Part shown: piece after piece, positions 1,350-34,880 of the stretch | How the letters are laid out: each line of letters opens with the position of its first letter | How positions within the stretch are numbered: the first letter of the stretch is position 1 | IMG/VR virus record: IMGVR_UViG_3300013093_000017 | Coordinates: 1-64,000 of that record | Length of the DNA: 64,000 nucleotides | Direction: 5' to 3' (one strand) | Translations under genes and position numbers: made by a program | Notes under the pieces: model-generated | What the model was told of the DNA's origin: nothing | Databases searched by the model: none | What the model saw: the letters and a program-made list of their open reading frames with translations, nothing else

Positions 1350-4300
1350 ATGAAAACAATCAAAATAGCAATATTAGACTGCGTAGGACTCAACTATGAT
1401 GGCACTACATTAAAGAAAAAGGGGATTGGCGGCAGCGAAAGCTCTATCATTTCCATTGCTCCTGAACTGGTTAAACTAGGTTTTGAAGTAACTATATTCA
1501 ATGACTGCGATACCAGTGAAACTAGCCCGGGTGTATATGACGGTGTTACCTACTATCCTATGCGCACACTTGGCCTGCGCAACTTTAACTTTGATATTGT
1601 TATTAGCCAACGTACTATTATACCATTTACCCCAGAACACCTGTATGATCAAGTTAGACAGCCGCCGCCTCGTGATTATGATCCAAAATGGTTCCATCAA
1701 TTACAACGTCCAACACAGTTAAAGATCCTTTGGCAGCAGGATACATTCATATGGGGTGACCACTTACTAGAACCGTTGATACTCAATGGGCATATCAACG
1801 AAGTGTTTAACATCAGTGATTGGCACATTGCTTACACTACTAACTCTTCACACGGTCCTCGTAGAAACTTTGAAGTATTAAAGAATCACGTGTTCAACAC
1901 ACGCAATGCTATCAATCGTTGGATTGATTGGGTAGATGTCAAGGCCAAAGATCCTAATCTATTTGTCTACAACGCTAGTGTGACCAAAGGCATGGAACCT
2001 TTAGTCCGTGATATATGGCCTAAACTTAAACAACAGTTACCTAATGCCCGATTAAAGATCATCGGCGGATACTACAACTTCCGTGATCAAGCAGTTAACG
2101 AAGCCAACGAAAAAGTAATCGCCCTGCAAAAATTAACTGCCAACGACCCAAGTGTAGAATTTACTGGTATTATTCCGCAACCTGAAATTGCTGCAATTAT
2201 GGCTCAGGCCAGTTATAATCTATTCCCTGGTGCGTTTCCAGAGACCAGCGGCATCAGCACAATCGAAAGCATCAACTACAATACTCCTATTCTAGGTGTA
2301 CGTTTTGGTGCTATGGAAGAAAGCGGAACTGACAGCGCCAGCTATTACATTGACTATGCTATTGAACCTAACGGATTGTTTCCGTGGATCAATAAAGATT
2401 GGCAGGTAGACCGCTATGTGCGTATGGTCTTAGACGCAGTTAACAATCCCTATCTACATCAACAAAAACAATATGCTTGTAATAATGTTAAAGATGTATC
2501 AACTTGGGATACTGTGGCCCTACAATGGAAACAACACTTCTACAAGTGGATGGGAATGGCACTTGATGCCAGTGAACAGGCTCGAGTAGATTGGATTAAC
2601 TATCGCGTGCGTAAGGTGTTTGGTCGTAGAATTGCCAACACAGAGGACATTATACAGGTTGCCAAGAACACTGATCCTATTCCACTTAACCAACCTCGAG
2701 TCAAAGTAGCCTACATTGATATTGTAGGTATGGCCTATGATGGAGATACATTAAATCGTAAAGGTATGGGCGGTAGTGAAAGCGCAGTTATTCTATCAGC
2801 ACAGGAAATGGCCAAGATAGGATTTGATGTTACTGTGTTTAATGCCTGTGATGAGGATGATAACAAGCCCGGAGTATATAACGGTGTACGCTATCGCCCA
2901 TTAAGTGAATTAGCACAAGCTGACGTATATGATATTGTTATTAGTTCGCGAGTAGTAACCCCATTTATAACAGAGCCGTTCTATCAATATCCGCAGACAA
3001 CCAATCGTAAAGTTGATTACGAAATCTTTAAACAGATACGTGAGCAGGCCCAATTAAAAGTATTTTGGATGCACGATACTTTTTGTTGGGGCGATGATAT
3101 CCTAGAAGAGTTAGTAGTCAGTGGAGCCATTGATGAAATATGGACATTAAGTGATTTCCACACCATGTACATTATGAACTGTAGTCATCCTCGTATGCGT
3201 AACTATGAAGTACTGCGTAACCATGTGTTCACCACACGCAATGGTATTGTCAAATACTTTGATAGTGTAGACCTGGATAGTAAAGATCCTAATATGTACA
3301 TCTTCAATGCTAATATGAGTAAGGGACTTGATCCTCTACTTAATCTAGTATGGCCAAGAGTTAAACAACGTTTACCTAATGCACGCTTAACTGTGATTGG
3401 CGGACATTATAAATTAGGTGCTGCATTTTCACACAATGACGAAGAATCAGAATTTATGAAAATGGTGGGACCGCACCTAACTGATCCTACTATCACATTC
3501 ACGGGAATTATTAAACAAGAACAAGTGGCCAACTTATCAGCCAAGGCCAGTTACTTTATCTATCCTGCAGGCCTCCCTGAAACCTATAGTATCAGCGCAG
3601 TTGAGTCATTATATGCTAACACGCCTTTACTGACCTGCCGCTTTGGCGCCTTAGAGGAAACAGCAGGACCGCATAGTTATATGATTGATTATGCTATAGT
3701 ACCTAACGGTCTGTTTCCTAATATCAATTCGGAAGAGCAAGCTGATAAGTTTGTGGACATGGTTGTTAAGGCCTATAACAATCCCACTGAGCATAGAACA
3801 CGCATGCGTGCATTAGATGATATTAAAGATATCGTAGGATGGGAAGTAACTGCTCTAGAGTGGAAGCATCATATCTACAGTAAACTAGGTCTATACTTAA
3901 GTCCTAGTGAAAGTCAACGGGTAAGATATACCAAGGCCAAATATCATCAAGTGTTTGGCCGTAGATACACAACACCAGAAGAGTGTCTGGCTCCTAAACA
4001 AGCAGTTGAACAAAAGATTGTAGTTGTTAGTCCGTTCTTCAATGCACGAGATTATGTTGAACGTTGCATTGCCAGCGTGGCAGCACAGGATTATGAAAAC
4101 TACGAACACTGGTTGATCGACGATGTTAGTTTTGACGGAGCCCGTGAAGTTGCAGAGGATTATATTGCCGATCTACCTGCTGATATACGAGGAAAGTTTA
4201 AGTTAATTAGAAATAGTGATAACCAAGGGGCAGGATACAACTATGTACAGGCAATCCGTGGTCAAAGTCCCGATACCATCGTCTTGATGCTAGACGGAGA

Positions 4301-6032
4301 TGACTGTTTAGTAAATCGTCCAGATGTGTTTGACTACTACAATAAGTTACATCAGGACTATGACTTTACCTATGGCAGTTGTTGGAGCATAGTTGACGGT
4401 ATTCCTCTACAGGCACAACCTTATCCTCCTGAAGTTAAAGCAGCAAAAGCCTACAAGGATTATAAATTTAATTGGAACTTACCGTATACTCACCTGCGTA
4501 CAATGAAAGCAGGATTATTAAACGGAGTATCGGATAGTAAATTCCGAGATGCAGATGGCAACTGGTTTAAAGCAGGTAACGATCTTGCTATATTCTATGC
4601 CGCAATAGAAAATGTAGATCCGGATAGAGTATACGCAGTATCTGATATTGTGTGTAATTACAACGATGCTAGTCCCTTAAATGACTATAAAATACATCGA
4701 GACGAACAAGATCGTACCATTGCCTCAGTCTTGGCCAATGACGATAAGAAGTATTCAGTAGTTGTTCCAACCATGTGGCGTGTTAATGATATGTTCTTAC
4801 CATTCCTTGGTCGTTTATGTAATGAGAATCTAGTTGATGAGATTATTATTATCAACAATGACAACACACGTACTCCGCAGGGGTTAACTCATCCTAAGAT
4901 TAAGATACACGACTTTGGCAAAAACATATATGTAAATCCTGCGTGGAACTTTGGAGTACGTAGCAGTCAAAATGATCGCGTGTGTATCCTTAGTGATGAT
5001 GTAGTGTTTGATACTAATCTGTTTGATAAGTTAAAAGATCTATTAACTGTTGATGCGGGTGTATTTGGATTATGTCCAGGAGATCCTGTATGGAATCAAC
5101 CACCTATCACTGATAAGACTATTGATATCATTCCGTGGACAGGTCAGCATACCTTAGGCTATGGATGTCTAATGTTTATAAACAAAAACAATTGGACTGA
5201 TATCCCGGATGGATTAAACATCTACTACGGTGATAACTTTATATTTGATTTTCAATTAGGTGCAGGTAGAACAAATTATCTAATCACTAATATGGATTTT
5301 GAAACACCAATGGCTGCTACATTGATTACCATACCCGAAGTTACCAAAGGTATGATGGAAGCAGAAACTCTAGTATATGATCAAGTGAAAGCCAATATGC
5401 TCACTCCTAAGGCACCTAAACAATTGAAAAAGATATTAATTGCAATACCTACAAATAGGAATATTGAAGCACAGACATTTAAGAGTATATACGATCTAAT
5501 TACTCCAGATGGGTGTGAAGTTGCCTTCCAATACTTTTGGGGATACCAAGTAGATCAAGTACGCAATCTAATTGCAGACTGGACCTTGCGTAATGGGTTT
5601 GATTATTTGTTCTGTGTGGATAGTGACATAGCGTTTCCGCCCGACACACTATTAAAATTAATGAGCCACAATAAAGATATTGTTAGCGGAGTGTACATTC
5701 AACGCATACCAGGTACACATACAATTGAGATAATGCGAAAAAATCCTTGGGGTGGAGTAACGCATGTTAACTGGGATGATATCAAAGGACAAGGACTAGT
5801 GCCAATTGATGGCTGCGGGTTTGGCTGTGTGTTGATTGATACTAAAGTATTACAGGCTATACCGTATCCGCACTTTCTATATCATAGTGCAATTGATCAT
5901 GCAAATACAGTAAGTGAAGATGTACATTTCTGTAATCAAGCACGGGATCATGGATTTAGTCTATGGTGTGATACCAGCATAACCTGCGAGCATATTGGAT
6001 CTAGCACATTCAGGGTTGGACAGATTACATAA
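1350..6032 (+). CDS. Five-domain glycosyltransferase (2x GT-B/GT4-like + 3x GT-A/GT2-like)
   Basis: Duplicated module (KGIGGSES / KGMGGSES; PETSGISTIES / PETYSISAVES), then VVSPFFNA...LDGDD, VVVPTMW...SDD and IAIPT...DSD...GCGFGCVLI...SEDVHFC. Confidence 0.85.
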   Translation: MKTIKIAILDCVGLNYDGTTLKKKGIGGSESSIISIAPELVKLGFEVTIFNDCDTSETSPGVYDGVTYYPMRTLGLRNFNFDIVISQRTIIPFTPEHLYDQVRQPPPRDYDPKWFHQLQRPTQLKILWQQDTFIWGDHLLEPLILNGHINEVFNISDWHIAYTTNSSHGPRRNFEVLKNHVFNTRNAINRWIDWVDVKAKDPNLFVYNASVTKGMEPLVRDIWPKLKQQLPNARLKIIGGYYNFRDQAVNEANEKVIALQKLTANDPSVEFTGIIPQPEIAAIMAQASYNLFPGAFPETSGISTIESINYNTPILGVRFGAMEESGTDSASYYIDYAIEPNGLFPWINKDWQVDRYVRMVLDAVNNPYLHQQKQYACNNVKDVSTWDTVALQWKQHFYKWMGMALDASEQARVDWINYRVRKVFGRRIANTEDIIQVAKNTDPIPLNQPRVKVAYIDIVGMAYDGDTLNRKGMGGSESAVILSAQEMAKIGFDVTVFNACDEDDNKPGVYNGVRYRPLSELAQADVYDIVISSRVVTPFITEPFYQYPQTTNRKVDYEIFKQIREQAQLKVFWMHDTFCWGDDILEELVVSGAIDEIWTLSDFHTMYIMNCSHPRMRNYEVLRNHVFTTRNGIVKYFDSVDLDSKDPNMYIFNANMSKGLDPLLNLVWPRVKQRLPNARLTVIGGHYKLGAAFSHNDEESEFMKMVGPHLTDPTITFTGIIKQEQVANLSAKASYFIYPAGLPETYSISAVESLYANTPLLTCRFGALEETAGPHSYMIDYAIVPNGLFPNINSEEQADKFVDMVVKAYNNPTEHRTRMRALDDIKDIVGWEVTALEWKHHIYSKLGLYLSPSESQRVRYTKAKYHQVFGRRYTTPEECLAPKQAVEQKIVVVSPFFNARDYVERCIASVAAQDYENYEHWLIDDVSFDGAREVAEDYIADLPADIRGKFKLIRNSDNQGAGYNYVQAIRGQSPDTIVLMLDGDDCLVNRPDVFDYYNKLHQDYDFTYGSCWSIVDGIPLQAQPYPPEVKAAKAYKDYKFNWNLPYTHLRTMKAGLLNGVSDSKFRDADGNWFKAGNDLAIFYAAIENVDPDRVYAVSDIVCNYNDASPLNDYKIHRDEQDRTIASVLANDDKKYSVVVPTMWRVNDMFLPFLGRLCNENLVDEIIIINNDNTRTPQGLTHPKIKIHDFGKNIYVNPAWNFGVRSSQNDRVCILSDDVVFDTNLFDKLKDLLTVDAGVFGLCPGDPVWNQPPITDKTIDIIPWTGQHTLGYGCLMFINKNNWTDIPDGLNIYYGDNFIFDFQLGAGRTNYLITNMDFETPMAATLITIPEVTKGMMEAETLVYDQVKANMLTPKAPKQLKKILIAIPTNRNIEAQTFKSIYDLITPDGCEVAFQYFWGYQVDQVRNLIADWTLRNGFDYLFCVDSDIAFPPDTLLKLMSHNKDIVSGVYIQRIPGTHTIEIMRKNPWGGVTHVNWDDIKGQGLVPIDGCGFGCVLIDTKVLQAIPYPHFLYHSAIDHANTVSEDVHFCNQARDHGFSLWCDTSITCEHIGSSTFRVGQIT

Positions 6033-12078: not shown

Positions 12079-12096
12079 AGTATTAGGAGATATATT

Positions 12097-13764
12097 ATGG
12101 CCGTAATTGAGGTGGCGAAGTTACAAGTCCGCCGAGGACAAGAAGGTATTACAGGATTACCACAGCTGGACAGTGGTGAATTTGGTTGGGCTATTGATGC
12201 ACAATCTTTATATATCGGTAACGGTTCGTTAGCAGAAGGCGCTCCAGCAGTAGGTAACACCCGTGTCTTAACAGAACACGATGTTAATCTATTCAATTTA
12301 TCTACCAGCACTTCTTATCTGCAAAATGATGCAGGCCAGCATCGCGACAGCGGTATAAATTTATATACAGATCCATCTGGTAGTGCGTATACCTATAGAA
12401 CTGTAGCCGATAAACTTAATGACTTTGCCACAATATATGACTTTGCGGGCATCAATGATGGTGTTACTGATAACACTGAAGCATTGCAAAATGCCATTGA
12501 TCAAATTTGGTTAAACTCCGACAAGAACAGCACACGCAGTAGAATAGCATTACGTATTCCTGCCGGCACATATCTTGTTTCTAATACAATATACATTCCA
12601 CCTTACACAACCTTAATTGGTGATGGGCAAGAAAAGACTGTTATTCGTTTAATGTCAACATCTGCATCTCTATTACAGACCTGTGATGTAACTAGTTCAG
12701 CCGGCGAGTATGTGTACTTCCAACCAGGTAATACAAATATTACCACTAATATTCCTAATATAAGTCTAATTGGAATAACATTTGAATACAATCCAACATT
12801 TAGTGGTGGCGGCAATAATACTATGCAACCTACCCTGCCGATTGTACGTCTTGACTGTGCTACTGATTCTCAAATTATTGATTGTAGATTTAACGGTTAT
12901 TATGTGGCCGGTAATTTAGACGTCTATGGTAGTAGTGTAGATTACTGTGGATTAGAGCTACGCGGACAAGGGGCAATTGCCACTAAAGATCTATTAATTG
13001 AAAATTGTACGTTTGATGGGTTTATATACGATATTAACTCAAATTACGATATACAAGATACTGTTATCAACAGTTGTATATTTAGAAATTCCAGCAGAGG
13101 AATTGTTGGTGGACAAACATTGGCTTCTGGAAATAGTGCAGGACCAGTAAGAACCAAAATACAAAATAGTAAATTTGTCAACATTGAACAAGAAGCTATC
13201 TATTTCTTTGATAATGGTATTCCTGCTTATAATATCAGCACACACAATACATTCCAAGAAGTTGGTAATAATTTAAACGGTGATATTAATCCTGTTACTG
13301 CGGTTCTTAATTTCCAAAGTCAGGGTAACAGATCAATTGAGGATTATTTTGGTCGATTTGATGTAATGAATGCCGATCAGGGTGGAAATTATTTCCGTGA
13401 ACTAGTTGAAGGCAAGGGCTACGAAGAACGCACCAGCGTATTAGAACATAATTTATCTGCCGGCACGGTGTTATTGGCTAAATTTCCAATAGCCATAAGT
13501 GATCAAGCAATTAATATGCAATATTCGATTATTAAACCTGTTGCAAACGTATACAGAACGGGCGAGCTACATATACATGTATCAGTTAATGGTGATGTTC
13601 CAACTGCTACACTTACTGAAAATTATTCATATAATGGAGCCAACAATGGATCTATTGAGTTTTCAGCGGCTACTAATACTCTTACCAATACTTTGAGTCT
13701 TAGTTTTATAAACAATGGCACCGCAGAAGGTGTCTTACGTTACAAATATAACCAACTACAATAA
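12097..13764 (+). CDS. Virion protein with pectate-lyase-like beta-helix (tailspike/baseplate type)
   Basis: N-terminal LQVRRG...GEFGWAID..LYIGNG; DGVTDNTEALQNAID; repeated ..NC.F. beta-helix turns. Confidence 0.7.
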   Translation: MAVIEVAKLQVRRGQEGITGLPQLDSGEFGWAIDAQSLYIGNGSLAEGAPAVGNTRVLTEHDVNLFNLSTSTSYLQNDAGQHRDSGINLYTDPSGSAYTYRTVADKLNDFATIYDFAGINDGVTDNTEALQNAIDQIWLNSDKNSTRSRIALRIPAGTYLVSNTIYIPPYTTLIGDGQEKTVIRLMSTSASLLQTCDVTSSAGEYVYFQPGNTNITTNIPNISLIGITFEYNPTFSGGGNNTMQPTLPIVRLDCATDSQIIDCRFNGYYVAGNLDVYGSSVDYCGLELRGQGAIATKDLLIENCTFDGFIYDINSNYDIQDTVINSCIFRNSSRGIVGGQTLASGNSAGPVRTKIQNSKFVNIEQEAIYFFDNGIPAYNISTHNTFQEVGNNLNGDINPVTAVLNFQSQGNRSIEDYFGRFDVMNADQGGNYFRELVEGKGYEERTSVLEHNLSAGTVLLAKFPIAISDQAINMQYSIIKPVANVYRTGELHIHVSVNGDVPTATLTENYSYNGANNGSIEFSAATNTLTNTLSLSFINNGTAEGVLRYKYNQLQ

Positions 13765-24407: not shown

Positions 24408-24539
24408 ATGAAAACTAAGAAACTAATACGCAAGATGTACCGTGCCAGCGTTAGGCATAACCTAAAGAAACAAAAGAAATTGTGGCTTAAGATCCTTAAG
24501 AAAAGTTTGGAACATAAGCACACAGAAGTAGTACAATAA
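24408..24539 (+). CDS. 43 aa basic small protein
   Basis: TAAGGAG RBS; MKTKKLIRKMYRASVRHNLKK...; paralogue at 53834. Confidence 0.6.
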   Translation: MKTKKLIRKMYRASVRHNLKKQKKLWLKILKKSLEHKHTEVVQ

Positions 24540-24540
24540 A

Positions 24541-24795
24541 GGATTGTTGTAATTCCTTCAACGTGAAGGCATGGCGGACGGGGATTCGATTTCCCCCTCC
24601 TACACTAAGGGTATTTGAAATAGTATCTTTAGTGTGGGAGACCAGGTTTCGACGGCGTGAGATAGCGAACAAGGCAACACAGTAGGCGATGACTGTAAAT
24701 CAAGCAAAATCTATAAATGCAAGCAATGATAGCATTTTCGCACTTGCGGCCTAAAATCCGTTGTGCCGAGTTTAACTAACTTGGGAACAGAATAG
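24541..24795 (+). ncRNA. ssrA: Two-piece (circularly permuted) tmRNA
   Basis: T-arm and acceptor 3' strand CTCCTAC-A (24597-24604) come before the 5' strand GTGGGAG (24634-24640) with G3.U70, joined by an intervening hairpin; tag frame 24719-24754 ASNDSIFALAA*. Confidence 0.88.
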
Positions 24796-25572
24796 TTACA
24801 GGGTCTTCGGACCCTGTTCTTTTGATAATTTATTCTGTTTTCTAGTCTCTAACATTTTTTTGACAGATTCAGGATTTTTCATAGGATTTAATCGACTGTC
24901 GCCAAATCCTGTATCAGATTTTCCTTTATTCCACGCAGGTGCTACCCTGTTGTGCTTTTTTCCAACTTGCGATGGGCGTATTTTGGCCTGATATCGATTC
25001 CGGCAAGTCGCATTGCAATAGTAATGTTCTTTAGGTGAATGATGGCAAAACTCTTCATAGATTAATTCAGCATTACAGTTAGTACACTTATAATATCGGA
25101 GTTCTTTTGGTTTCTTTTTTGTTTTATTAATTTCTCGCATTATTTCTGCTTGCCGACTTCTTCTTTCATCCGATGCAGATACCCAAGATCGTTTAGCCTG
25201 CAATCCGTCTGCATTATGATTATTTGATATCATATAGGCAATGTGCTCTTTGCGAACAATTTCATAACATTTAGAATTATTACGTTTTAATCGATCACAC
25301 ATAAGTTTAAAGGCCTGTGATTGCTTGCCACCGTATGCTTTCCATAATAATCTATGGGCAACATAATGTTGTCGTAGGGTTAATGCTGCTTTATTCCAGG
25401 GATATTTCTTAAATGATTTAAATTCTGGGAATAAATCAGACGATTTAGGGCATATATGATGATCTTCAGTTTCAAGTAGATGAGTAGTAACAATGCATTG
25501 ATTAATAAATTTAATATATCTATTAAGGTAATGTGAATTATGAGGTTTAGATTTTAATATATCAGCAAACAT
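24796..25572 (-). mobile_element. Free-standing HNH homing endonuclease (Mob-like)
   Basis: HHICPK...N...LTLRQHYVAHRLL; CxxC...CxxxC; TATAAATA on the minus strand at 25593-25600. Confidence 0.8.
24798..24823. terminator. Terminator overlapping the HNH gene 3' end
   Basis: ACAGGGTC-TTCG-GACCCTGT followed by a T tract. Confidence 0.8.
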
Positions 25573-31878: not shown

Positions 31879-32457
31879 ATGAAAAAGTTTTTATTAGCAG
31901 TACTTTTAGCAGTAGCATCAGTATCAGCATTTGCTGACGCAGGTAATTATGCATCAGCAGGCATCGACTTTAAAGACAAGCAAGATTCAACTAACAACCA
32001 CACAGTATATGGTTTAACAGTTGGGCATGACTTTGGCAACACATGGAAAGTTGAAGCACGCATGGAAGACGAAACTGTTAACGGTGGCGCACACGAAGGT
32101 CTAGTTCAACTTAAAGTGAACAAAGACATCGGTACTTGGTATGGTGTTACTCCATACGCAGGGGTAGCAGTTGGTGAGAAAGACAAATCAACTACTAACT
32201 TTATCTATTACCTAGGTGAAGTTGGCGCAAAGTACACAGTATTGCCAGGTTTAACAGCGTTTGTTCAAGAACGTCTACGTACACCATTTAACGAAAACTT
32301 AGATGGCCATACAGGCTACGGTTACAAGACTTGGGAAACATCAGTAGGTGCAAAATACGCAATTAACAAATCAAATGCTGTTGGCCTACGATTTGCTGTA
32401 GAGCGTGGAGATAGCGCATACAACACAGTTGGTGTTAACTACACATACTCATTCTAA
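31879..32457 (+). CDS. Outer-membrane beta-barrel protein
   Basis: Signal peptide, alternating amphipathic strands, C-terminal YTYSF beta-signal. Confidence 0.8.
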   Translation: MKKFLLAVLLAVASVSAFADAGNYASAGIDFKDKQDSTNNHTVYGLTVGHDFGNTWKVEARMEDETVNGGAHEGLVQLKVNKDIGTWYGVTPYAGVAVGEKDKSTTNFIYYLGEVGAKYTVLPGLTAFVQERLRTPFNENLDGHTGYGYKTWETSVGAKYAINKSNAVGLRFAVERGDSAYNTVGVNYTYSF

Positions 32458-32476
32458 TTTAATTTAGAATATATTC

Positions 32477-32515
32477 AAAAAGGCCTTGACGGGCCTTTTT
32501 GTTTGGCTATATAAT
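32477..32515 (+). promoter_or_regulatory. Terminator hairpin whose loop carries the -35 of the tRNA promoter
   Basis: AAAAAGGCC-TTGAC-GGGCCTTTTT; TTGACG-N18-TATAAT. Confidence 0.55.
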
Positions 32516-32523
32516 ATGTATAT

Positions 32524-32597
32524 GCGCTTGAAGCTGATCGAATAGCAAGAGCTTCTAAACCTCCAGGTAGTGGGTTTGACTCCCACCAAGCGCACCA
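32524..32597 (+). tRNA. Atypical tRNA: anticodon CUA (amber) in canonical register, or degenerate Arg(UCU)
   Basis: Acceptor GCGCTTG/CAAGCGC-A-CCA, D stem GCTG/TAGC, T stem GTGGG/CCCAC, variable loop AGGTA; anticodon loop TTCTAAA; anticodon stem has only 3 pairs. Confidence 0.75.
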
Positions 32598-32614
32598 ATT
32601 AATTAAGGAATAAG

Positions 32615-32914
32615 ATGAATTTCAAACCATTACAAGATAAGATTTTAGTTAAACGTATTGAAAACGCTAATGTGTCGCAAGGCGGTATATTAGTACCAGA
32701 TGCCTCAGTTGAGAAACCAAATCAGGGTGTTGTACTGGCAGTGGGTCCGGGTAAGTATCTGGCCAATGGAACATTTCAACCAATGACATTAACAGTCAAC
32801 GATAAGATCTTATTCACCAAAGGCGCAGGTGCTCCTGTTAAAGTGGATGATGAAGAATACGTTGTTCTGAAAGAAGACGATGTTTATGCCGTGATAGGAA
32901 CTGTGGCTAAATAG
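32615..32914 (+). CDS. groES: Co-chaperonin GroES
   Basis: FKPLQDKILVKR, GGILVP, VLAVGPG, LKEDDVYAVI. Confidence 0.95.
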   Translation: MNFKPLQDKILVKRIENANVSQGGILVPDASVEKPNQGVVLAVGPGKYLANGTFQPMTLTVNDKILFTKGAGAPVKVDDEEYVVLKEDDVYAVIGTVAK

Positions 32915-32985
32915 AATTGTAGGAAGGTCCTACAACCGACAGACTTTAATACAAGCACTTAGTCTGTGTGCTATAAGGAAGAAAA

Positions 32986-33810
32986 ATGATGTACTCAAAC
33001 AAAATGGCAGCCGCCATCAAAGTCAACGGAAAAGTTTTACGCGAATTTAAGGATACAGTTTATATCCCATTTGGCAGTCAATATTCCATCTTAGTAAAAA
33101 ATCTAAACACAGTACGAGCAGTGGTCCATATTGAGCTAGACGGTGAAGAAGTAGTTGCCGGAGGTCTAGTAGTTGGCGCTGGACAGGAAGTAGATTTAGA
33201 ACGCTGGGTCAAAGCTGACAATCTAAAGAAAGGCAATAAGTTTAAATTTATTGAGCGTACTGCCAACATTGAACAACATCGCGGTGTTGGTCTTGAAGAT
33301 GGTATTGTTCGCATTACCTATCAATTTGAGCAGGTAATGAATCCAGTTATAGGAATTCACCGTGGTAATATGCCCGGAGTTATTACAACAACTAACCCTT
33401 GGGATACTCATGGCATTCTGCGCAGCTCCACATCAGGTGGGCAAAGTGCTAGTTACAGTTCTTCTATGATTAGCACGGCAGCATTTAACAATGTAGCAGT
33501 TAGTGCCACTTCTGCAACCGGATTGCCTGGTGTAACAGCATCAATGAAACATGAGCAGAGTAACGATGCAGGTATTACTGTACCGGGTAGTAAGAGTGAT
33601 CAAAAATTCCAAACTGCCAGTTGGTTTCCTACAGAATCCGAAACACACTCAATGGTGTTTAAACTATTAGGTGCTACTGAAGATAATCAACCTGTGTATA
33701 AGGCAGTGACAGTCAAAGCAAAACCTAAGTGTGTGACCTGTGGCAAACAGAATAAGGCAACTGCTAAATTCTGCGCCGAATGTGGCACAGCATTAGAAAT
33801 ATTTGCATAA
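32986..33810 (+). CDS. Hypothetical protein with C-terminal zinc ribbon
   Basis: CVTCG...FCAECG. Confidence 0.7.
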   Translation: MMYSNKMAAAIKVNGKVLREFKDTVYIPFGSQYSILVKNLNTVRAVVHIELDGEEVVAGGLVVGAGQEVDLERWVKADNLKKGNKFKFIERTANIEQHRGVGLEDGIVRITYQFEQVMNPVIGIHRGNMPGVITTTNPWDTHGILRSSTSGGQSASYSSSMISTAAFNNVAVSATSATGLPGVTASMKHEQSNDAGITVPGSKSDQKFQTASWFPTESETHSMVFKLLGATEDNQPVYKAVTVKAKPKCVTCGKQNKATAKFCAECGTALEIFA

Positions 33811-33824
33811 TCAGTAATGAGGGG

Positions 33825-33853
33825 TTGACAGCCCCTCACTTTATAAGTACAAT
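33825..33853 (+). promoter_or_regulatory. sigma70 promoter of tRNA-Cys
   Basis: TTGACA-N17-TACAAT; the -35 lies in the loop of TGAGGGG/CCCCTCA. Confidence 0.7.
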
Positions 33854-33863
33854 GTAAGTTAAT

Positions 33864-33938
33864 GGGCATGTAGCAGAGTATCACATGCGCACCGTTGCAA
33901 ACGGTGAGAGGAAGGGTGAAAATCCATCCGTGCCCTCC
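33864..33938 (+). tRNA. tRNA-Cys(GCA) with non-canonical D and T loops
   Basis: GGGCATG/CGTGCCC, U73, CCA; stem CACCG/CGGTG with loop TTGCAAA; T loop GTGAAAT. Confidence 0.85.
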
Positions 33939-33957
33939 ATATTCTAAAGGTAAGAAA

Positions 33958-34227
33958 ATGAAACTATTTACTGTTACATCAAGATACGAAGGAGAAATGT
34001 ATCCGCAGGCTGTATTCAGTATAGGAAAATGTTTTCTTTCTGAAGGTAAATTTGATGGTTGGTATCTAAAGATAGAACTGCCCATTAATAAAATGAAAAG
34101 TTACATTAGTCCAAAGACATTCGAGCCTACAGTAGGTAAATGTAATTGGGCAATGTTATTACGCAAACGCCCAATGTATAGTAATATATTCAAAGCAATC
34201 ACATGGGTTCCAATCGAAAAAGTATAA
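33958..34227 (+). CDS. Hypothetical protein
   Basis: AAGG RBS after the tRNA; the ORF-track start lies inside the tRNA. Confidence 0.6.
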   Translation: MKLFTVTSRYEGEMYPQAVFSIGKCFLSEGKFDGWYLKIELPINKMKSYISPKTFEPTVGKCNWAMLLRKRPMYSNIFKAITWVPIEKV

Positions 34228-34304
34228 TGGATGTCCTAGAACGAGCAGCACGATTAACAGAAATATATGAAGTAAAATAAATATAAATTTAAGGAGAAGT
34301 AACA

Positions 34305-34880
34305 ATGTTATAGATTGGTAAACAAATTGAATATAAATGTGAAGATGTAGTTTTTCACTTTAACAAGAAACATCTCGAAGACCCAACTGTTCCTATGTGG
34401 GTTGTCAAAAGCCATGGTGTTACATTTTATGTAAATCATGTATCAGCAGAAATTCCGTGGAGTACTAAAGAAACTCCAAATAACGATCATACCAAAGGTA
34501 GTATCAAATTTAAGAAATGTAAGTTAAGCATTAGTCGTGAGAACGAGGCAACCTTGTCGCCGCTTGGTCTAATGGATAGATTACTATCTCACCCAAAAAT
34601 TTCCACACGTATTATCGCTAGCAGAAACGGACATTTCCACGATGCTCTACGTGCAGGTGAGTATAAGCACAGTGATATTAAAGAAATTGGCGGCGGCTGC
34701 GGCAGTGCGTTTATTATCTGTGACCTAACGGATAAGAACGAATCGCTTATGGCTGCATTAAAGTATTCGGGCAAGTTCCGCATACTTGCGCCAAACGAAC
34801 GTTACTATATTGACTACGAAGCTGGTAATGACCTGTACGAATATGACGAGGAGGAGTTTGATGATGACGATCTTTATTAA
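34305..34880 (+). CDS. Hypothetical protein with in-frame TAG at codon 3 (readthrough or disrupted allele)
   Basis: AAGGAG at 34291-34296; ATG TTA TAG, then 27 open codons in frame with ORF 34395-34880. Confidence 0.6.

Follow-up and report, generated by a model that had tools for sequence, protein, structure and literature searches.

The stretch of DNA analyzed here (the window) comprises the first 64 kb of IMGVR_UViG_3300013093_000017, a linear 229,675-bp virus contig from IMG/VR with a GC content of 38.6% and a CheckV completeness of 65%, which represents a jumbo phage from lake-water metagenomes. Our subject is one gene of this phage, called here the FHFNK gene, whose strong start of translation is followed almost at once by an in-frame TAG codon (the gate), together with an amber suppressor transfer RNA (tRNA) of anticodon CUA that is encoded farther upstream (Table 1). 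Beyond the TAG the frame stays open through an ATG at position 34395 to the terminal TAA, making 191 codons if UAG is read. The gate stands in the zero frame, the conserved downstream frame being that of the ATG and the TAG, and so no frameshift is needed to pass the stop. There is no ATG, GTG or TTG between the TAG and position 34395, and no Shine-Dalgarno (SD)-like sequence is found 5' of the ATG at that position. An earlier reading of the letters alone (the original prediction) had noticed an SD-ATG-TTA-TAG start running in frame into a 161-amino-acid open reading frame (ORF) at 34395 without a clear SD of its own, with a putative CUA tRNA about 1.7 kb upstream; the sequence bears out each of these points, and the tRNA is real.

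Table 1. Positions of the FHFNK gene, its parts and associated features in the window
Feature	Position	Strand	Remarks
Two-piece (permuted) transfer-messenger RNA (tmRNA) gene	24494..24845	+	Betaproteobacterial type; tag ASNDSIFALAA; ~9.5 kb from the gated gene
Candidate promoter	32486..32515	+	Sigma-70-like match TTGACG-18-TATAAT (11/12); ends 8 nt 5' of the tRNA; consensus match only
Amber suppressor tRNA, anticodon CUA	32524..32597	+	Rfam tRNA 32524-32594; CCA encoded, to 32597
Candidate promoter, second	33825..33853	+	Sigma-70-like match TTGACA-17-TACAAT; precedes ORF 33895-34227 and the gated gene; consensus match only
Shine-Dalgarno AAGGAG	34291..34296	+	8-nt spacer to the leader ATG
Leader, two codons, ATG TTA	34305..34310	+	ATG 34305-34307, TTA 34308-34310
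Gate codon TAG	34311..34313	+	Followed by ATT GGT (TAG-A context)
Body of the gated gene, 188 codons and TAA	34314..34880	+	TAA 34878-34880
N-terminal all-beta domain	34320..34562	+	Residues 3-83; FHFNK...PMW...TKETP...TKGSIK
Ferredoxin-like beta-alpha-beta-beta-alpha-beta domain	34602..34832	+	Residues 97-173
Acidic disordered tail	34836..34877	+	

The TAG recurs in independently assembled DNA. A 1,902-nt contig of the probable source run covers positions 32541-34442, and a 312-nt contig of a second, independent lake study (2020) covers 34116-34427, both with zero differences from the window; no variant at 34311-34313 is reported. The runs behind this comparison gave DNA metagenome contigs, the run search having been of the kind "any" and not aimed at RNA. 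Megablast of the region against phage records produced no match.

Homologues indicate where the protein begins. With the piece following the TAG as a query, tblastn retrieved three cultured phages over residues 9-82, the similarity beginning 19 residues before Met28, the residue encoded by ATG 34395. The elements FHFNK, H, L, P and PMW do not vary in a four-sequence alignment over VFHFNKKHLEDP, the block FHFNK.HL being upstream of Met28; the FHFNK block is conserved upstream of Met28 also in an alignment of 56 sequences, from which loci of annotated records were left out. Thus ATG 34395 is not the start of the gene, and the homologues, which the original prediction had proposed to align, extend N-terminally over this segment. 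Distant homologues and a few close ones begin with an ordinary ATG 2-6 residues before the equivalent of Ile4.

The gate itself is conserved. A first scan of IMG/VR covered the best 80 of 382 relatives, and later scans brought the set to 92 unique gated DNA versions. Going upstream from the domain, the first stop met in frame is TAG in each of the 80 loci scanned first, and in 79 of them an AAGGAG/AAAGGA-type site, an ATG and 0-5 sense codons stand ahead of it. The gate is TAG in all 92 unique versions, neither TAA nor TGA ever occurring there in this clade. The leader is 1-6 codons long and unconserved in sequence in the same 92 versions, with 16 different forms of the codon before the gate, and gated versions extend down to about 51% protein identity. 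In the window locus a zero-frame stop thus separates a start signal from conserved coding sequence that has no other canonical start, these being the marks of a readthrough gate.

Several homologues are present in public records in altered form. Proteins starting with MAQIAY or MSQQQIEY have TAG in the DNA and were translated under code 15. The homologue in Rhizobium phage RHph_I1_18 reads MSEFM-TAG-NESCREVIFHFNK and ends 12 nt 5' of a tRNA(CUA); this gene (L003 1474-1722, MN988519; the loci fetched for comparison are designated by L and a number) is missing from the public annotation. At locus L163 the gene starts with ATG TTA TAG ATG TTA GAA, and the spacer of about 105 nt between the CUA tRNA and the gene (4290-4395) looks structured, with GC-rich complementary ends, and has no Rfam match at gathering scores. 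The neighborhood of the gated gene varies; AhpC- and AhpD-like genes recur downstream and explain nothing.

The suppressor tRNA of the window scores 45.4 bits with the Rfam tRNA model (gathering score 29) and 78 bits with our own covariance model R1, and its 3' end lies 1,714 nt upstream of the TAG. It has the anticodon loop UUCUAAA, the pairs G1-C72, C2-G71 and G3-C70, and the discriminator A73. ARAGORN run on the window missed this gene, probably because pair 27-43 is mismatched on top of the unpaired 31-39. In an alignment of 44 CUA tRNAs of this family, 92.5% of the cells are paired and compensatory changes occur in 18 of the 21 pairs, with none of 500 shuffles matching the observed covariation values; G1-C72, C2-G71, A73, U33 and CUA-A37 are invariant. 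The pair 31-39, which closes the anticodon loop (alignment columns 34 and 42), is open in 38 of the 44 sequences, leaving a 4-bp stem and a 9-nt loop, an unusual structure. ARAGORN names CUA tRNAs "tRNA-Pyl"; a search for the PylS synthetase (TIGR02367) gave no match in the 65%-complete contig, and a pyrrolysine system was thus not recognized. By analogy with E. coli, where precedents exist for class-I CUA tRNAs with A73, the inserted amino acid is probably Lys or Gln.

A terminator-like hairpin (32476-32501) lies ahead of the sigma-70-like match that precedes this tRNA. Just 5' of the tRNA is ORF 31879-32457 (plus strand), which has a signal peptide and the look of an outer-membrane beta-barrel protein; in L163 and L164 the counterpart of this ORF matches PF13505 (OMP_b-brl). 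On the 3' side, a homologue of the GroES co-chaperonin (32615-32914, plus strand; NCBIfam, 1e-31) begins 18 nt after the tRNA. The main tRNA array of the contig, of about 26 genes (72039-80674 and 85405-85499), lies outside the window, 40 kb from the isolated CUA tRNA; among its members are a 92-nt tRNA-Ile(UAU) and a tRNA-like gene of 95 nt whose anticodon loop is odd.

Gate and suppressor tRNA are physically linked. Using ARAGORN and a covariance model built from the 44 CUA tRNAs on flanks of up to 4 kb, we detected a CUA tRNA within 4 kb of 78 of the 89 unique gated genes; 74 of the linked tRNAs precede the gene on its own strand, and for 54 the distance is no more than 500 nt. In two loci the Rfam motif "freshwater-2" (RF02980, 76-78 bits) is found on the opposite strand just 5' of the CUA tRNA (L045 3471-3554 and L048 3467-3547, both on the minus strand); this RNA motif was not found in the window.

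Elsewhere in the genome the standard code is used. Under code 11, 207 non-overlapping ORFs of at least 100 amino acids give 86% coding coverage of the contig, and they end in TAA (135), TGA (43) or TAG (29, i.e., 14%). No genes split by an internal TAG are seen in the contig, and extensions past its ordinary TAG stops are no longer than those past other stops. When the whole contig was scanned for an SD followed by ATG, up to six codons, any stop and at least 80 open codons, the FHFNK gene was the one match. The 65% of the genome present contains no release factor gene (RF-1 domain, which would include RF2), no SmpB (PF01668) and no match to PTH2 (PF01981). Thus the phage has the CUA suppressor tRNA of TAG-recoded phages, but neither their many in-frame TAGs nor their rarity of TAG stops. 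A 228-amino-acid ORF of this contig (11395-12078, plus strand) has TAG-A at its end, and the same frame continues as a 561-codon ORF (12079-13764, plus strand), the first start codon of which is codon 6; it is conceivable that the two are fused when the CUA suppressor is active.

The scan for gates in all fetched loci revealed only one other recurrent family, a PTH2-like peptidyl-tRNA hydrolase. Its gate has the same form, SD-ATG-x-TAG-ATT (e.g., ATG TCG TAG ATT GAA), and is present exactly where the FHFNK gene starts ordinarily, namely, in L158, L160, L019, L132 and Sinorhizobium phage Phosso. The gene order there is PTH2-like gene, one or two small genes, FHFNK gene, all tightly packed or overlapping. 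The Phosso PTH2 piece counted from the TAG scores 72.9 bits and covers profile positions 3-113, as compared with 60.6 bits for the annotated protein. The PTH2-like protein of the L158 type scores 21.1 bits against PF01981, below the cut-off; the neighboring gated gene is above the cut-off in Phosso and Agrobacterium phage Atu_ph07 only. In the public records the PTH2 genes of Phosso (L001 534-866, PV764938, XYS97424.1) and Atu_ph07 (L002 549-881, MF403008, AUZ95035.1) are annotated from an internal Met that falls within the conserved RGDLEM motif.

In relatives the gate codon matches the anticodon of the encoded tRNA. In huge phages of the Atu_ph07 type, 17 unique PTH2 genes were found beside an FHFNK gene, and 16 of them are gated. 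In Atu_ph07 the gate is TGA (ATG ATT GGC GAA CAC TTT TGA ATT), and the best match of its genome to the tRNA model has the anticodon UCA. Similarly, in L180 and L184 an SD, an ATG, six codons and TGA precede the PTH2 gene, and each of these genomes encodes one tRNA with UCA in the proper register, some 4 kb downstream from the cluster; a GTG directly after the TGA could also act as a start there. Phosso, RHph_I1_18 and L178 combine a TAG gate with a CUA tRNA, L178 being without a UCA tRNA. Thus the gate stop tracks the co-encoded anticodon, which is expected under readthrough and not under reinitiation. The PTH2 genes of RsoM2USA, Xoo-sp13, SCTP-2 and RAS14, four further cultured phages, have ordinary starts and are ungated. 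A possible second suppressor of Atu_ph07, with the anticodon CUA and a long variable region (CTCTAAA, 18 nt, GGTTCGA), was noted at 323917-323951 on the minus strand.

Of 98 unique family loci, 16 have a gene for tmRNA no more than 4 kb from the family gene, and in 11 the distance is at most about 300 nt; the window contains a tmRNA gene as well. In five types (L006, L036/L117, L105, L114 and L126; ~4537-4955) the tmRNA begins 12-13 nt short of the point where the stop codon of the family gene ends; in L022, L120, L130 and L151 (~3360-3847) it is 150-300 nt upstream of the gated gene. Together with the PTH2 cluster, this proximity places the gated genes among end-of-translation functions.

The FHFNK protein is predicted by AlphaFold with a pLDDT (predicted local distance difference test) of 81.6 as a whole and 92.4 for the N-terminal domain alone, residues 4-16 forming the first long strand of the all-beta domain. 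When this domain alone was compared with solved structures, the best match reached only Z 3.7. The second domain is of the ACT or RRM kind (Z up to 6.1), a common arrangement that says little, and the fold matches of the complete model were all weak, of tandem-RRM or ACT-like type. Nothing was returned when PDB sequences were searched by profile with the gated protein. At 90% identity the family falls into 1,125 clusters, and at 50% it has 174 representatives, none of them named; its N-terminal domain stands alone in RHph_I1_18 and forms the C-terminus of proteins of about 175 amino acids in Atu_ph07 and Phosso. Several candidate identities were considered and rejected. A lead to RF3_C in the ESM Atlas (0.62) was weak and is treated as chance, the Atlas yielding nothing reliable. 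SSB-like and SmpB-like readings were dropped, the N-terminal domain having no fold match above Z 3.7. The gated protein has no Pfam match to SmpB, no SmpB appears among the fold matches, and its tail is acidic, the tail of SmpB being basic. The window protein has no Pfam match to PTH2 either.

The conserved pairing of gate and tRNA in about 100 related phages implies that the full-length product is very probably made only with a working suppressor tRNA. Given the anatomy of the locus, the coding extension N-terminal to Met28, the conservation of the TAG, its linkage to the tRNA, the standard code elsewhere and the match of gate codon and anticodon in relatives, we consider it likely that translation of the FHFNK gene is gated by the phage's own suppressor tRNA, a dependence that the original prediction had proposed and that the comparative data support. 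Ribosomes would start at the strong SD-AUG of the leader and reach the UAG one codon later. Either the host release factor 1 (RF1) would terminate there after a dipeptide, or the tRNA(CUA) would insert an amino acid and translation would proceed into the conserved 188-residue protein. The full-length output would then follow the balance of charged suppressor tRNA and RF1, so that the start region would work as an AND gate of mRNA and tRNA. Two further suggestions of the original prediction fared less well. Recoding limited to a single gene holds for this genome, with its single gate match, but not across phages, where the PTH2-like gene is gated as well. As to a timing or toxicity switch, nothing suggests toxicity, and the context of tmRNA and PTH2 points to translation rescue.

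A number of observations weigh against control by the suppressor tRNA. Readthrough at the gate is something we infer from sequence comparison. The anticodon stem of the window tRNA has only three Watson-Crick pairs, with mismatches at 27-43 (A-C) and 31-39 (C-C), which puts the efficiency of suppression in doubt. The tRNA is not adjacent to the gated gene in the window, a GroES homologue and two ORFs separating them. Eleven of the 89 gated genes have no CUA tRNA in the available sequence, five of them with less than 1 kb of upstream sequence. A TAG-gated PTH2 cluster occurs in L193 (IMGVR_UViG_3300049044_000033, 462 kb, complete), where a strict anticodon-loop/T-loop pattern found no CUA tRNA. 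Conversely, the lineages L019, L158, L160 and L163, in which the FHFNK gene is gate-less, retain a CUA tRNA; most of them carry the gate on the neighboring PTH2-like gene instead. The gated protein has no match in Pfam, PHROG, NCBIfam or PADLOC and no convincing match among solved structures. Finally, the codon after the gate is biased and in one lineage is itself a start codon, a point that bears directly on the most serious alternative.

According to this alternative, AUG UUA UAG is a minigene on which termination is normal, and the ribosome restarts at the adjacent AUU with no need for a suppressor tRNA. The codon following the gate is ATT in 80 of the 92 versions, against a share of 43% among the other Ile codons of the same genes, the other conserved Ile positions of which use other codons; ATT follows the gate also in the PTH2-like genes and in Atu_ph07, L163 has TAG ATG, and the form is like that of the bar minigenes of phage lambda. 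Given the ATT excess and the TAG ATG lineage, termination followed by a restart at AUU or AUG could yield some product without the tRNA, and a restart at AUU may provide a basal level of it. However, reinitiation should be indifferent to the identity of the stop, yet TAA, the terminator of most ORFs in this genome, is never used at the gate, and in relatives the gate codon follows the suppressor anticodon. It also leaves the close linkage of the CUA tRNA unexplained. ATC, ATA, AAC, GTT and GAA are found right after the gate as well, and a purine (A) at +4 is a known good context for suppression. On balance we regard reinitiation as an improbable explanation of the conserved arrangement. The reverse emphasis, in which the gate mainly senses RF1 activity and opens when host RF1 is depleted or inhibited, the phage tRNA being secondary, would fit the tmRNA and PTH2 context, and since UAG is read only by RF1 among the release factors, the output would depend on the tRNA-to-RF1 ratio in any case. 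But relatives with a TGA gate encode the UCA tRNA that fits it instead of depending on the loss of RF2, and the tRNA is encoded in cis to the gated gene, so that we judge such a role very unlikely.

The remaining explanations would deny the gate altogether. Gene callers annotate the 161-amino-acid form starting at ATG 34395, and Met28 is conserved, as if the upstream frame were open by chance; but the invariant FHFNK.HL and a 12-residue stretch predicted as a beta strand both come before Met28, no SD precedes ATG 34395, homologues without the TAG start 2-6 residues before the Ile4 equivalent, and the truncated form is modeled poorly in the Atlas (pLDDT 0.34), whereas the full form reaches 81.6, which makes the shorter gene a slim prospect. 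From the presence of the CUA tRNA and from the pipelines that translated some homologues with TAG as Q, one might suspect that TAG is reassigned throughout the genome (code 15), as it is in crAss-like or Lak phages. Such reassignment is extremely unlikely in a genome that is 86% coding under code 11 and ends 29 of 207 ORFs with TAG, without any internal-TAG gene and, in the 65% of the genome present, without an RF-1-domain release factor gene. For any premature stop the prior expectation would be an error of sequencing or assembly, a rare variant or a pseudogene; since the contigs of two independent studies are identical over the site and the gate is conserved in 92 unique sequences, this can hardly be credited.

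If the FHFNK gene is indeed controlled by the suppressor tRNA, the question arises what such control would be for. The genomic context tentatively suggests that the gate ties an output in translation rescue or peptidyl-tRNA handling to the amount of stop-codon suppression, a possibility that we hold to be real but well short of even chances. In its general form the proposal, which we put forward with slightly greater reserve, would be that standard-code jumbo phages possess a self-contained "suppression sensor," composed of a CUA or UCA tRNA and a matching stop codon after the start of FHFNK and PTH2-like genes, which often have a phage tmRNA beside them, by which the clean-up machinery would be scaled to the readthrough imposed.

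Phage suppressor tRNAs have so far been discussed for the recoding of many genes, and the reason why standard-code phages keep them is unclear. The arrangement described here offers a conserved, dedicated target for the suppressor tRNA in such phages. Were the sensor interpretation true, these phages would possess a natural feed-forward or feedback circuit at the level of translation, and a first functional reason for suppressor tRNAs in non-recoded phages would be at hand. The gate could also be an early step toward full recoding. The presence of the arrangement in three cultured phages, Rhizobium phage RHph_I1_18, Sinorhizobium phage Phosso and Agrobacterium phage Atu_ph07, makes these proposals testable. 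In addition, there is a practical consequence for annotation, as gene callers treat gated genes wrongly, cutting them at an internal Met, overlooking them or translating them under code 15.

No published description of this arrangement was found in the literature searched, a search limited in reach and thus no proof of novelty. The closest natural relatives are the recoded gut phages (crAss-like, Lak and others; TAG read as Gln, code 15), in which stop codons within phage genes are read by a suppressor tRNA of the phage, the host having the standard code (10.1101/2021.08.26.457843). Borges et al. also propose a regulatory purpose for recoding and describe standard-code relatives that acquired a suppressor tRNA (10.1101/2021.08.26.457843). 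The common element is a phage-encoded suppressor tRNA for a stop inside a phage gene. The differences are that here TAG still terminates ORFs normally (14% of them), that the effect is confined to one gene or gene cluster, and that the stop is always at codons 2-7, just after a strong start, and physically linked to the tRNA. An engineered parallel is provided by synthetic amber-suppression AND gates and "leak dampeners," feed-forward loops with a suppressor tRNA in which an early stop removes leaky expression (PMC7969014). The logic is the same, the output requiring both the mRNA and the suppressor tRNA; whereas those gates are engineered, the present one, a natural counterpart of them, is conserved across about 100 phage lineages on particular gene families.

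Two classical systems share single elements with the gate. In the autoregulation of prfB, the gene for RF2, an in-frame UGA at codon 26 is passed by a +1 frameshift, and the product is the factor that reads that stop. The two have in common that expression becomes a readout of how efficiently translation terminates at an early in-frame stop close to the 5' end, but here the frame is unchanged, a cognate tRNA would read the stop, and no feedback by the product is in evidence. The bar minigenes of phage lambda consist of an SD, AUG, AUA and a stop, and are linked to the biology of peptidyl-tRNA hydrolase. The strong SD, the AUG, the single sense codon before the stop and the link to peptidyl-tRNA hydrolase are shared with our locus; unlike it, the bar minigenes are not known to have a conserved protein in frame after the stop or a tie to a particular stop codon or suppressor tRNA. 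As for the PTH2 family (PF01981) known from large phages, the second gated gene of the relatives belongs to it or resembles it, and the gene of the window is not a PTH2. What sets the present case apart is the combination: a single dedicated stop codon after a strong start, a matching anticodon, linkage in cis, restriction to one or two gene families, and a genome in which TAG is otherwise a normal stop.
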